A stretch of 64,000 bases of DNA, taken from positions 1 through 64,000 of the forward strand of contig JAHLWZ010000626.1 of NCBI GenBank assembly GCA_020536535.1. The letters are read 5' to 3'. Positions within the stretch are counted from its first letter, which is position 1; every line of letters starts with the position of its first letter. This document shows, piece after piece, positions 18,401 through 25,965 of this stretch. The notes under the pieces were generated by a model. That model worked only from the letters and a program-made list of their open reading frames with translations, had not been told where the DNA came from and ran no database searches. Source of the stretch: Pelomyxa schiedti (lineage: Eukaryota; Protista; Evosea). The position numbers were made by a program, and so were the translations under genes.

Positions 18401-19134
18401 TTCCAATTGATGCAGCAGTACCCATCTGCATTTCAATTTAATGACTCCTTCCTTGTTTCGATTATGGAGGCTAGTTTTTCGGTACAATAAAAAGTTTGAG
18501 AGTAACAGTTTCCTAGGAAGCTCTTATTGGGCGGTTTGGTACTTTCTTGGGTAACTGTGATCGACAACGCTCTCAGTTGGCCCCTTCTGTGGTGTCCCTT
18601 TGGGACAATCTGCACCACTTACAACATCCTCAACGATCACTTTCACAGCGGCTCAGATACCCCAAAAGTGGCAACTCCAGCAATGTTAATACAACATGTC
18701 CTATATTCCTTGACTTTATAATAGGCGAACTGCAAGTCGTCCATTTTCCCATTTGTTAACCCTTACTACGACCCATTGTACAAAGATACAATCACACCTA
18801 TGGTAATTCTAGACCTCTGATATTAAAATTCTAAGCAAACGAATAGATTGGGGCACACAACTTGCAACTATGGACGAATTACTACTTCCGGCTGATGCCA
18901 GAAGGAACAGACACAATGTCTATAGCAAATGACCAGAGACTGTATAAATTCATGGAGATGAAAACTCTTATCAGAGACCTCCAGCACGAAATAGCCACCC
19001 TCAAAGGTGACCCACAACAGAACAGCAACGCAACGGAAACAGAAGAACATCAACCGCGCACACCACAAGCAACCACAACAGTCCCACGACCTAACAACAC
19101 TACCGAAACCACAGAATTCTGGCAAGGAGTCTAA
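15461..19134 (+). CDS. Myotubularin-family phosphoinositide 3-phosphatase (GRAM + phosphatase + coiled coil); start uncertain
   Basis: [12 protein letters not shown]; WRISTVN; [12 protein letters not shown]; [11 protein letters not shown]; [17 protein letters not shown]|EWLKIGHKF; [10 protein letters not shown]; FGTFLGNC. Confidence 0.92.
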
Positions 19135-19227: not shown

Positions 19228-19269
19228 GGGATTTTTTAGATGGAAAAGATTCCGGAGAGGGGTGAGGAG

Positions 19270-19560
19270 TGAACTGCCTCACCGTTGTGGGGTGTTCAGC
19301 CTGTAAAGCTTCGTTGGTGTCCGACCACGGATCACAGTCAGAGCATTATGCGGGTTTCCGCGGGCTTTGGCTGTTCCTTGGTCAAATGGCCCAAACGGAC
19401 ACAAGATTTGTCGCCGGAGTCAGCGTCGTCCCAGTCTGGTACTGGACAAGCCCTGCTGGTTATGGCGAATAGCCGCCACCTAGGGTGATGGATGAAGGGC
19501 CAGGCTGCTGGAGACCTGCTCCAAATGGCTGTGCTTGTGACGGATGCTGCAGGTTTTTTT
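19270..19560 (+). ncRNA. Unassigned ~290-nt structured ncRNA, copy 1
   Basis: Homologous to 21038-21332 with compensatory changes in several stems; terminal stem CCTGTA/TGCAGG; T7 run at 19554-19560; upstream DUSE-like element. Confidence 0.7.
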
Positions 19561-19680
19561 GGTTTTGATTGTGGTTTCCCCACCAGTGGCGATACCATTA
19601 AAAAATGATTGACAGAGATCCTCTGGTTTAGTGTTTGGGAGTTGTTTTAATGTTTAGGAAGCTGGCACTGAGGGTGTTAG

Positions 19681-20820
19681 ATGAAAACACCCACCTCAAG
19701 TTGGGTTCTTGCATCAGAGATGATAAGAGATCCATCGAAGGGGAGTGCGTCACCCCAAGTTGGGGGTTGTGCCTGTCCCACAAGTTGGACCCAAATCGAC
19801 GAGTGTGTTGCAGAGGCCGTCGTAAGGAACGTGGGCGATCTGCCAACGTTGGTTGCGCTCGACCTGGTCAACAAACAGTTCCACAGATTCGCGTCCAAGT
19901 TGGTGCTGTTGTTGCTTGTGTGTTTTGGGAGTCCGTCTGTGTGTAAATCATTCCGTGCATCCAATGTTCCTCATTATTCTTAATACACATCCAGAGATAC
20001 TTAAAAAAAAAAGGTAGGAAGCTGAACCTACTTCGCAGTACACACATTTTGTGGCTAACAGAGCGTGACAAATCAGTGGCGCGAAATGGAACTACTCCGG
20101 GGGAAGTCATTACAGTCAGGGTTGTTTGAGGGATGAACCGGGTGGCGACTTTGCAGGAAGGTTCTTTGTTGTAAGTGCACCAGTTAGGGGTGGAACTGTC
20201 ACGTTGGAGCTGTGGGGTATGTATTTATCCACCATCTTTTAATAATGGGCGTTTGCTCCTGGTAAATAGACACTGAGACAGAAAGATATCCCGCATGGAG
20301 ACATGTGTGTATTTTCCCAATGTAAACCTCAAGGCCAATTCCAAAATAGATAAGCGGCCAGTCAAGAAATTGCCGCGAACCGATTGTTATTGTTCTTGTA
20401 TACGATGTTACAAACTTCTTTCCCTTTGATGGTCTCTACCAAATTGTCAATGAGTGCCGAGGACAGTGGTTACCCAAGGTAAATGGTTTTTTTTATCTCT
20501 GTTTATATTATCTGAAGTTCAAAAATGATATGTCATACTATCTATAAGTGGAAATTTACACTACCACCAACCAGTTCCTTGTTTGTGGCAACAAGGCTGA
20601 CTTGAACCGCAGCCCCAGTTCTTGTGGTGGTGGAGGAGTCACATACTCACAAGGGCAGGACTTCGCAAGAGCCAACAGCTGTGATGGGTTTATTGAAGTC
20701 TCCGCTAAAGCCAATAAGAATATACCGGAACTGCTCAGGGCTATTGGAGTTCTAGCCCTGGAGGATGCGGATCAAAAACAGCACCAGACTGAGGACCGAT
20801 CCCATTGTAGCCTGATGTGA
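19681..20820 (+). CDS. Divergent Ras-superfamily small GTPase with an F-box-like N-terminal segment and C-terminal CaaX
   Basis: Degenerate G1 (CFGSPSV) and G3 (LELW|DTETERY); IVLVYDVT; LVCGNKADL; FIEVSAK; ends CSLM. Confidence 0.75.
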
Positions 20821-20972
20821 GTGTGATGTGTAACCAAGGAAACTGCAAACACAAAAAACCATGCTAAAGAAGCTTCTCATTCTCACTTCTAGAGGCAACT
20901 TCCTCATAAGCATGATTGATTGAAGGGTCAGTGTGTGCCCCTGAGTGCACCAGGGTCTTTTTCTTTAGGTCC

Positions 20973-20996
20973 CGACCCATACTTGAAACACACAGG
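20973..20996 (+). promoter_or_regulatory. DUSE-like ncRNA upstream element (CGACCCATACTTGAAACACACAGG)
   Basis: Aligns with 19206-19227; lies 63 nt before the TGAAC of copy 2. Confidence 0.55.
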
Positions 20997-21037
20997 ATTT
21001 CATAGCTGCCAAAAGCTCCCAAAGTTTGGGCTCTGTT

Positions 21038-21332
21038 TGAACCTCCTCAGAGTTATCTGACGAGGTCAGCCTGCAAAGCTTTGCTGGTGACCGACCTTGG
21101 GTCAACAATCAGAGAACAGGGCAGCGTTTGCAGCCTAACGCTCTGGTTGCCTTGGTCAAATGGCCCAGACGGACGCAAGATTTGTCGCCGGAGCAGCTTT
21201 TCCCCAGCCTGGTGCTGGACGACCTGGTTTCAGGCAAATTGTCGTTACTAGGGGTTAGGATGAAGGCATCAGGCTGCGGGAAACCCGGCTCCAAATGGCT
21301 GTGCTTGCGACGGATGCTGGCAGGTTTTTTTT
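21038..21332 (+). ncRNA. Unassigned ~290-nt structured ncRNA, copy 2
   Basis: See copy 1; T8 run at 21325-21332. Confidence 0.7.
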
Positions 21333-21441: not shown

Positions 21442-24275
21442 ATGGACACGGCGAAAGGCGATGATGGGACGGCGGTGGCGACGAAGACCAACGAGGGGGT
21501 GATTGTCTCGAGTGATGGAGAGACACTGAGGGTTGGGGAAGAGGGCCCTTTGTTGATTGAGGACTTTGTGTTCAGGGAGAAGTTAACTCACTTTGACCAC
21601 GAGGTGGGTCTTGGGGAATACCATGCCAACAAGCAATTTCGTTTTTGCCCTGGATTGGATTGGATCGATTCGAGTTGAATTGAAAATGCGGGGAAGATTC
21701 ACTCTCATGTGAGTGGGTCCAAGCTTTTTGATTCTCTCCCTTGTAGAGAATTCCAGAGAGAGTTGTGCATGCAAGGGGCTCGGGAGCACATGGATATTTT
21801 GAACCAGTGGAAGGAGCTTCTAAAGTTTGCAAGGCTGCTTTCTTGAAATCACAAAGCAAGACTCCTGTGTTTGTGCGTTTTTCTCAAGCTGTGGGAAGCA
21901 GAGGCTCACCAGATACTCTGAGAGATGTTCGTGGATTTGCTGGTAAGCTCTCCTTTGTATCTTCCCTCCTCCGAAGCTTATGCTTGATACAGTCAAGTTC
22001 TATACCAGTGAAGGAAACTATGACATAGTTGGAAATAATTTTCCCGTTTTTGTGATACAAGCAAGCATTGAAGTTAAATACTTTGGCTTCTTAATCATCT
22101 TCCTCAGGATCCTATGAAATTTCCCGATTTTGTTCATGCTAATCGTCCTGAACCAAACAGCGAGATTCCAAATAACTCTAGTGCACATGCAACTTTCTGG
22201 GATTTCGTGGTGAACACACCCGAGTCAGCACATCACGTACTGTGGTATGCCTCGATTTATTTATGAAACTTTCCTACATAAAACCCAGGCAAATGTCAGA
22301 CCGCGCACTTCCCAGAAGTTACAGGATGATGGAAGGGTAATTACTATTTGGGCAATTTATGGTTTATTTATACTCATATGCAGATTCGGAATCAATTCTT
22401 TTTACATACAAAATGATGAAGTTGTCCACCTCAACTTAAGTTTTACTATTTACATACAAATAGGGTAAAAGGTTTGTTGCCAAGTTCGTTTTTAAACCGC
22501 TTCTTGGTTCACACTCACTTGTTTGGTACACCCTCGTTCTCCGATATTGGCATAATCTTCACTCAGGGATGAAGCGCAAAAGCTTGCAGGACATGACCCA
22601 GATTTCTTGAGACGGGACTTGTGGGAAGCTATTGAACAAGAAAACTGGCCAGGCATTACTCAGTACTGGAATCGACTTCTTACTTTTGTTGTAGAGTACT
22701 CTTTTGGTGCCCAACTTATCTCTGAGGAAGAAGCACCAAATTTCCCTATTGACATTCTGGATCCTACAAAATTGTGGCCGGAAGAATTAGTGCCAGTCAC
22801 ACCTCTAGGGAAATTAGTATTGAACAGAAACCCAACAGACTTCTTTGCAGAAACTGAGCAAGTTGCTTTTTGTCCAGCTAACATTGTGCCTGGGATCGAC
22901 TTCACTGATGATCCAATTTTACAAGGTAATTTAACACAGGCTGCAGTTCCATTTAAGCCACAATTCAGGTCGACTATTCTCCTATTTGGATACACAACTT
23001 TCAAGATTTGGTGGCCCAAACTTTACCCAGATACCCATCAACAGACCTCTTGTTCCCGTTCATAATAACCAGCGTGGAGGATTCCATCAAATGGCAATTA
23101 AATCTGGCCGTGTAGCCTATTCCAACAACACAATCTGTGCGGATAAACCAACTCCCTCTAGCCAGCTGGGGTTTGTGACGCACCCCACACAAGTTTCCGG
23201 ACCAAAAGTACCACCTTTACTATACTTCCTCATCTGATCATCTTAGTTACGAATCAAGCCAAAGAAGTTTGGAGATTATTTCAGTCAAGCTGAGGTGTTT
23301 TGGAATAGTCAATCCCCTGTAGAGCAAGCACATATTATCACCGCATTTGGATTTGAATTGGGAATGATAGACCCTCCTCTTCGTCTCGCTGTAATCGAAC
23401 TTCTCGAAAAGGTACAACTTATCCTTATGTCATTTATCCTAATTCAAACTCAGGTGAGTCCTGACCTTGCCCACAAGGTTGCAAGAGCTGTGGGGGCCCC
23501 ATATAATGTCTTTGAACCGAAGCTTGCGTCTAGTCCTGTGTTCACGTCATTATCTTTGCTACCGTCCCTGCCTCAACCACTCAAGTTTGTTCTTTTCCAA
23601 TTTTTCATCCGCCTAGTGCCCTGACCTTTCGATTCTTATAGAACCATGAAAGTGTGCCTTCTTATTGGCAACGGGTTCGTGCAGCAGCAACACTCGCTAC
23701 TTCTTTCCGTTCTAACACGGCTGGGAACAACCCCCGTCACCATCACTGCTGCCCCGCAAACGGTTTCCACACAACAGATAACAGCCAGCGTTACACCAGT
23801 GTCATCAGCCAGTGTTCAGATGTACTACAGCAGCCTGGTCACAGCCAAGTCCACAATGTTTGATGCTGTGTGTATCCCTGGAGGATCCGGGATTGATGTA
23901 CTGATGGGAATGGCACTAGCGAGGTTTGTTCTGACACTATACAAACACCACAGCAACTATCAAACACTCGCACAATCAAAAACCAACATAAACCGCATAC
24001 ACAGGCAATTCGTTGAGGAAGCTTTCACACACTACAAGCCTATCATTGCTCTGGGAGATGGAATCAAGCTACTCACAGGCCTCCCAGACTATGTGGCAAG
24101 AGCCGGCCTTGCTCCCACTCCTTCAAAGCTTGCCCCATCAGTGATGCAGCCACGTGGAATAGTTGAGAGCCATGGAGTATTTACTTGTGCTGATGTGTCC
24201 GCTATCCCAGAGTCTGAGTTAAGTGCCGCTGTAATGACTACACTATCACAGTGGAGGCACTGGGACAGGATTTGA
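21442..24275 (+). CDS. katE: Large-subunit (clade 2, HPII/KatE-type) heme catalase with a C-terminal DJ-1/flavodoxin-like domain; about 13 introns
   Basis: FDHE|[18 protein letters not shown]; VFVRFS; RDVRGFA|[15 protein letters not shown]; LQG|RLFSYLDTQ; [12 protein letters not shown]; [12 protein letters not shown]; ends RHWDRI. Confidence 0.95.
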
Positions 24276-25731: not shown

Positions 25732-25746
25732 ACCCATAATTGTGAC
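25732..25746 (+). promoter_or_regulatory. DUSE-like ncRNA upstream element (ACCCATAATTGTGAC)
   Basis: 14/15 identical to 19208-19222; about 70 nt upstream of a box C motif. Confidence 0.6.
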
Positions 25747-25799
25747 TCGAGGCACAGTTCCGAGTGTAACGGTTCAAAGGGTTGCCGGTTTCGTGTAAG

Positions 25800-25965
25800 G
25801 AAATGTGATGACAACAAAAGCGCATAATTCCATAATGTTTCACCCAGTTTGACGATGAATTCCACGCACAACAAAGTCTATTGGCTTTGGTTGCGTGGAA
25901 CCTCGTTGGCTGGGGCATGTTGGTGATTAAAAATGAGTTAGTTTTCAATCTGATATTGTTTTTTT
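25800..25965 (+). ncRNA. Box C/D snoRNA-like RNA (~155 nt) with a long internal hairpin
   Basis: Box C GTGATGA at 25805-25811; box D CTGA at 25950-25953; short terminal stem AATG/TATT; T7 run at 25959-25965; internal stem CCCAGTT..TTCCACGCA..AAAGTC/GGCTTT..TGCGTGGAA..GGCTGGG. Confidence 0.7.

Follow-up and report, generated by a model that had tools for sequence, protein, structure and literature searches.

A five-locus family of structured RNA genes with a U6-type promoter pattern in the genome of Pelomyxa schiedti

Large structured eukaryotic Pol III RNAs are few, and the known ones run core machines (SRP, RNase P/MRP, telomerase, 7SK). Among them 7SK is known from animals, and the smaller Y RNAs combine a Pol III external promoter with paired ends and a U tail. 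Dictyostelium ncRNA genes carry an upstream element termed DUSE about 63 nt upstream (PMC3188802; PMC7919456), and the Class I/II RNAs of Dictyostelium are about 50-60 nt long and combine a single short stem with an 11-12 nt motif that stays unpaired (PMC7919456, PMC3188802). Type-3 telomerase RNAs of a size comparable to the RNA described here also exist (PMC12133305). The present analysis started from a window of 64,000 nucleotides of the archamoeba Pelomyxa schiedti, in which a sequence-only reading had proposed two diverged copies of a structured RNA, and was extended to the whole assembly of this species.

Five loci in a short and a long form

Pairwise alignment of the two segments in the window, c1 (19271-19560) and c2 (21039-21332), gave 77% identity over 274 columns, bearing out the claim that they are diverged homologues; the likely first G lies one base after each of the proposed 5' ends (19270 and 21038). 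No third copy was found by sequence search of the 64-kb window. Both copies are intergenic between same-strand genes with the next start codon 110-160 nt downstream. A myotubularin gene (stop at 19134) precedes c1, a small Ras-domain gene (stop at 20820) separates c1 from c2, and a catalase gene (start at 21442) follows c2. The gene that separates c1 from c2 (19681-20820) has its Ras-family domain at its end, and its first exon looks F-box-like by eye, without a Pfam match. The assembly at c1 and c2 is backed by four single-cell DNA runs, and the allele seen in c2 (Table 1) converts an A-U pair with position 21275 to G-U, the helix being kept. No conserved ORF was found in the RNA copies.

The P. 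schiedti assembly that was searched comprised 52,367,397 bases in 5337 contigs; the published genome of this species is 52.4 Mb in 5337 scaffolds (PMC8887013). A covariance-model search of the organism's own genome, which the sequence-only reading had suggested as a check, identified together with DNA searches five loci (c1 to c5), three of them new and all three on contigs other than that of the window. A rebuilt covariance model recovered the same five loci at 151-179 bits and nothing further above 18 bits. Complete genes were 290-440 nt long, and in the long form (c3-c5) the 5' hairpin and the arms were extended and arm 1 carried an additional hairpin at its base. The genes were 74-77% alike, their flanks were unrelated (21-41% by forced alignment) and the neighbouring genes were not the same from locus to locus. 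A 23-nt 5' motif with one mismatch was also observed at G000:C1114:9827-9849, possibly a sixth member that is diverged or partial. No further family member was present among forty other loci carrying the promoter plus a T-box. A metagenome scan with two invariant words returned 38 matches, all attributable to chance (best covariance-model score 7.5 bits, and inspection by eye), and a viral scan returned one chance match. The family is known from one species, and since these scans revealed no homologue outside the P. schiedti genome, deep conservation lacks support. A literature search found no published description of this RNA.

Table 1. Positions of the five loci and of features in the two gene copies of the window
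Feature	Position	Strand	Remark
c1 RNA gene, short form, about 290 nt	19271-19560	+	alignment, folding
c1 DUSE-like element CCCATAA	19209-19215	+	first G of the RNA at +63; element and spacing as at U6, U2, U3, SRP, MRP and U6atac genes
c1 T-rich box	19232-19237	+	+24 from the DUSE-like element
c1 5' hairpin, G first, closing directly before AGCCUG	19271-19297	+	folding
c1 5' strand of closing stem P1 and of P2 (conserved bulged U)	19298-19319	+	
c1 arm 1: variable hairpin, AAAU bulge, P2 3' strand	19320-19394	+	extra hairpin at base in the long form
c1 invariant core 5' strand: P3, 4x4 internal loop, P4, loop, P5	19400-19419	+	
c1 distal arm 2, variable in sequence and length among paralogs	19420-19518	+	
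c1 invariant core 3' strand	19519-19539	+	
c1 3' strand of P1 and T7 Pol III-type terminator	19541-19560	+	
c2 RNA gene, about 294 nt	21039-21332	+	alignment, folding
c2 DUSE-like element CCCATAC	20976-20982	+	first G at +64
c2 TTT box	20998-21000	+	
c2 5' hairpin	21039-21067	+	
c2 core strands	21174-21193 and 21289-21309	+	
c2 A/G allele	21206	+	one single-cell DNA run
c2 T8 terminator	21325-21332	+	
c3, long form, about 437 nt	G000:C1378		complete
c4	G000:C2127		near twin of c3, cut by contig end
c5, long form, about 417 nt	G000:C1602		complete

Promoter pattern and other RNA genes of the genome

In all four complete copies CCCATA lies 63-65 bases upstream of the first G of the 5' hairpin, a T-rich box follows about 24 bases past the start of this element, and the closing stem runs directly into seven or eight T. 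The CCCATA element was found at equal distance upstream of the U6, U6atac, SRP, MRP, U2 and U3 genes of this genome, the T-box being present at the U6, SRP and MRP genes and absent at the one U2 gene seen. A promoter pattern based on CCCATA had 44 matches in the genome in comparison to none for the reversed control. Because the element, its spacing and the T-box match those of the U6, SRP and MRP genes, and the T7-8 end that of the U6 and SRP genes, the sequence reads as a U6-type (type-3, gene-external) Pol III gene, with an element at fixed distance, a T-rich box and an oligo-T end all in place. CCCATA corresponds to the DUSE of Dictyostelium ncRNA genes (PMC3188802; PMC7919456), the Dictyostelium promoter thus reaching an archamoeba and offering a direct route to listing all such genes. 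Judged from sequence features, it is very probable that the family encodes a functional RNA that is transcribed as a discrete Pol III product and is under selection for its fold. Support at the sequence level for the earlier proposal, a Pol III-type ncRNA family that is transcribed independently and whose structure is under selection, comes from the shared promoter, the three additional paralogs, the absence of an Rfam match and the absence of SINE/MITE signs.

Canonical RNA genes were identified elsewhere in the genome for SRP (6), U3 (8), MRP, RNase P, U2, U4, U6, U6atac and 5S RNA, where the snRNA gene search covered U2, U4, U6 and U6atac. Unlike the MRP, SRP and U6 genes, the RNase P RNA gene (L015, G000:C676) does not have the CCCATA element. 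The six SRP RNA genes (L007-L012; G000:C455, C794, C817, C834, C850 and C714) start about 65 nt past the upstream element, and as they appear to open directly with helix 5, the Alu domain looks absent from them. An 18S rRNA match (L149, G000:C59:18787-23349) was spread over 4563 nt, and no 5.8S or large-subunit rRNA match at gathering score was obtained in the 19 kb downstream of it on the same contig.

Several further promoter-bearing segments were observed. The window itself has a third DUSE-like element at 25733, followed by a segment of about 170 nt with a box C (25805) and a box D (25950); this region (25733-25965) is probably an independently transcribed C/D snoRNA gene, and it had no Rfam match and no complement to 18S rRNA longer than 10 nt. 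A multi-copy gene of about 110 nt (L025:1560-1670; L026, G000:C76) combines a CCCATA promoter, paired ends and a T run and has no Rfam match; similar promoters occur on contigs C1369, C1384, C1650, C1880 and C2050. Four promoter-bearing loci of 180-470 nt (L074, L076, L080 and L085; G000:C233, C455, C721 and C803) form a family with a shared short 5' motif, which had no Rfam match and was unrelated to c1-c5 by covariance model. Lastly, a T-terminated, promoter-bearing segment of about 160 nt (L075, G000:C409:1069) had no Rfam match, and a similar promoter was seen at C3089.

Fold, invariant core and selection

Each copy in the window folded better than all 200 of its dinucleotide shuffles (z of -3.59 for c1 and -4.26 for c2), and every helix named in the sequence-only reading was recovered where it had been placed. 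The plus strand folded 20-33 kcal/mol better than the minus strand. When one shared core was enforced, each of the four complete copies lost 0.6-9.7 kcal/mol relative to its unconstrained fold. This core consists of the 5' hairpin, a three-part closing stem, a helix P2 with a conserved bulged U that leads into arm 1, and the base of arm 2. The latter is built from the helices P3, P4 and P5, with an invariant 4x4 internal loop between P3 and P4 and a second loop between P4 and P5. An alternative register of the core, with a 7x4 loop plus a bulge in place of the 4x4 loop, differs by about 1.6 kcal/mol. The short form has a junction with two long arms and the long form one with three, so that the fold envisaged earlier, a 5' hairpin plus a Y-shaped body with two long arms, holds as described for one of two forms in the family, the other having the extra hairpin.

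The invariant stretches were the two core strands and the stem ends, and the arm tips varied freely in sequence and length among copies. The word AUUUG was invariant, but it lies inside the 4x4 internal loop. A bulge module was repeated at the base of both arms. The arms contain near-perfect helices whose longest uninterrupted runs span 11-26 bp, and 69-76% of bases were paired.

The strength of covariation was examined in several ways. RNAalifold on c1 and c2 gave 77 consensus pairs, six of them changed on both sides, and about four of these six fall within reliably aligned helices. When pairs predicted in one copy were projected on the other, their retention gave P values of 0.05-0.47 against random substitution, and restricting the projection to well-aligned parts yielded no significance; indels, which displace the arms from their register, account for part of this. 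For the core of all five copies, 18 of 500 shuffles reached the observed covariation score, which is not decisive because related sequences can reach such a score without structure. Core changes that keep pairing included A-U to U-A in P1, an exchange among U-A, C-G and U-G in P2, one among A-U, G-C and G-U in P3, and A-U to G-U in P5; in the long form one pair of P1 is lost.

A different outcome was obtained for the fold as a whole, using a null model in which the real indels and changed columns were kept and the new letters dealt at random. Real paralogs folded 18-40 kcal/mol better than the mean of this null (z of -3.3 to -6.3), and null sequences as good as the real paralog numbered 0/400, 1/400, 0/200 and 0/200 in the four comparisons (1/1200 in all). 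Selection for the fold as a whole is therefore well supported, with individual pairs not proven. The earlier description of extensive covariation was overstated, given the non-significant pair-by-pair tests, and the retention of the whole fold is the stronger evidence.

Known RNA classes and candidate functions

Analysis of all copies by cmscan against Rfam 15, at gathering and at E-value thresholds, gave no match (best E 2.3 and 1.4), in agreement with the claim that the RNA matches no known class. SRP RNA, the obvious 300-nt candidate that had been missing from the earlier list, was excluded; the copies lack the helix 8 that carries a GRAA tetraloop and an AGCA symmetric loop, and the UGUNR motif of the SRP Alu domain follows the 5' hairpin in c1 only and is not kept in c2, c3 and c5. 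RNase P and MRP RNA were rejected on the absence of the CR-I and CR-V motifs that form P4 and on the presence of canonical genes elsewhere, and U3 and C/D snoRNAs on the absence of box C (RUGAUGA) and a terminal box D (CUGA). H/ACA snoRNAs were set aside since there is no terminal ACA and the H-like word is missing from c5 and, in c2, from the hinge. Spliceosomal snRNAs were rejected for want of U1, U2, U5 or U6 signature motifs and of a single-stranded Sm site, and 5S rRNA for want of a loop E-type 120-nt three-way junction and of an Rfam match. For 7SK, GAUC repeats (a single GAUC, in c1 only) and the 3' terminal hairpin are absent, and for Y RNA no copy has the Ro60-binding GGUCCGA helix with its bulged C. 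Likenesses to the U4 5' end, the U6 3' half, a U7-type Sm word, the 5S 3' end and 16S/18S helix 34 were either not kept across copies or concern RNAs with canonical genes, and no BLAST match to the rDNA contig had an E value below 0.098. By every test run, the sequences constitute a new RNA family on a known promoter type, and as the canonical RNAs are present beside it in the genome, the family appears as an addition rather than a diverged stand-in.

The combination of fixed loops and a fixed junction, arms that are paired without fixed sequence and no antisense target among the RNAs compared is a pattern of protein binding. By analogy with 7SK, Y or SRP RNA, we give an even chance to a scaffold or decoy mode within an RNP. 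The stand-alone RNA of the five-locus family would be made by Pol III from its gene-external U6-type promoter and would offer the junction, the bulged U of P2 and the invariant loops as docking sites. Two molecules of a single protein could sit on the bulge modules found at the bases of the two arms, and the arm tips would act as spacers for which double-strandedness is needed and sequence and length are free. From what is known of Pol III RNAs in general, the U tail of this RNA would bind La and its 5' hairpin could be capped by Bin3/MePCE, a gene for which is present in the genome. A further and more tentative reading, which we regard as possible and somewhat doubtful, is that the family represents an undescribed class of abundant eukaryotic Pol III RNP. 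Such an RNP would have a conserved protein-binding core of its own, isoform genes of short and long type, and unrecognised relatives in other Archamoebae or Amoebozoa, and would serve a core function, for instance as a transcription or translation decoy or in replacing a lost SRP function.

The near-perfect helices of the arms, together with two RNase III-domain genes in the genome, could instead point to a small-RNA precursor or a double-stranded decoy for a Dicer/Drosha-like RNase III, in which the core positions the enzyme and the arms give variable products. This is unlikely, as the short-form arms are much interrupted, no sense-strand mir family was matched, and the c1 and c5 arms had no other match in the genome by DNA search, so that no targets are evident. 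The presence of a TROVE gene suggests a more specific version of the scaffold reading, in which the RNA, bound by a Ro60- or TEP1-like protein, would be a large counterpart in function of Y or vault RNA. We consider it quite unlikely given that no copy has the Ro-binding helix or a B box, that the RNA exceeds Y or vault RNA three- to fourfold in size, and that the promoter-bearing family of about 110 nt at L025 fits this size better. The dispersal of several copies, and the position of c1 and c2 between same-strand genes 110-160 nt before a start codon, could be interpreted as a SINE/MITE-like or decayed repeat, or as a cis-element (UTR structure) of the neighbouring mRNAs, with no functional free RNA. 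This alternative is similarly improbable. There are five copies only, each complete copy keeps a correctly spaced external promoter, which is lost in retroposition, and an internal B box is lacking; target-site duplications were looked for and not seen, the longest words shared by the flanks being 4-7 nt and of low complexity. The neighbouring genes vary by locus, each copy is set apart from the following gene by its T7-8 run, and the fold has been kept where random change would have weakened it.

Two invariant stretches of 13-14 nt could speak for an antisense guide for rRNA, snRNA or mRNA processing, yet these stretches pair with one another, their antisense matches in 18S, 5S, U2, U3, U4, U6, U6atac, SRP, P and MRP RNA were none above shuffled controls, and there are no C/D or H/ACA boxes, making this reading very unlikely. 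A reading as diverged paralogs of telomerase RNA, which has a type-3 promoter in plants, ciliates and Hymenoptera, was considered because the genome encodes a TERT RNA-binding domain and type-3 telomerase RNAs of comparable size are known (PMC12133305). No copy has an 8-mer template for TTAGGG, taken here as the candidate telomere repeat, TTAGGG 6-mers lie at non-homologous places and are missing in c1, and a conserved single-stranded template is lacking, every invariant stretch being either base-paired or part of a short internal loop; we regard this alternative as highly improbable. The forty other promoter-plus-T-box loci likewise had no TTAGGG template, and internal TTAGGG arrays of about four units, none at contig ends, were observed at L059 and L061 (G000:C1298 and C1866). 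An equally remote alternative, with the tRNA-like partner in the SRP of trypanosomes as a model, is a separate RNA that replaces the missing SRP Alu domain, which would accord with SRP RNA genes that appear to begin directly with helix 5, with the Alu-like CCUGUA located 3' of the 5' hairpin in c1, and with SRP9 and SRP14 not being found (in protein searches that both lacked a positive control). Against it, UGUNR is lost in c2, c3 and c5, CCUG is consumed by the closing stem, pairing with SRP RNA was not above chance, and a joint loss of Alu domain and SRP9/14 requires no replacement.

In comparison to described systems, the five-locus RNA resembles RNase P/MRP RNA in size, and its promoter is common with that of the MRP gene, but it is without the P4 motifs CR-I and CR-V. 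Y and vault RNAs share with it a gene that reads as Pol III-type, paired ends and a U tail, and a TROVE protein is encoded in the genome; the five-locus RNA is much longer and has neither Ro-binding helix nor B box. Type-3 telomerase RNAs are similar in promoter type, size range and closing stem (PMC12133305), whereas here no conserved single-stranded template or adjoining pseudoknot was seen and there are five diverged paralogs with free arms. The Class I/II RNAs of Dictyostelium are likewise multi-copy, with a DUSE about 60 nt upstream, paired ends, a T-run terminator and a lineage-restricted distribution (PMC7919456, PMC3188802); the P. schiedti RNA differs in lacking the 11-12 nt motif and in being 290-440 nt long and 70-75% paired. 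Likenesses to 7SK include size, an external Pol III promoter, a U tail, bulged long stems, a possible scaffold or decoy role and the Bin3/MePCE gene, without the conserved GAUC repeats, the separate 3' terminal hairpin or an Rfam match. A family of five loci would join the short list of large structured Pol III RNAs, among which SRP RNA (7SL) is similar in its length of about 300 nt, in the upstream element and T-box that it has in P. schiedti, in a closing helix leading into the U run and in a branched body. The five-locus RNA differs from it in having neither helix 8 with GRAA/AGCA nor a conserved Alu motif, and in being conserved at the junction rather than at the arm tips.
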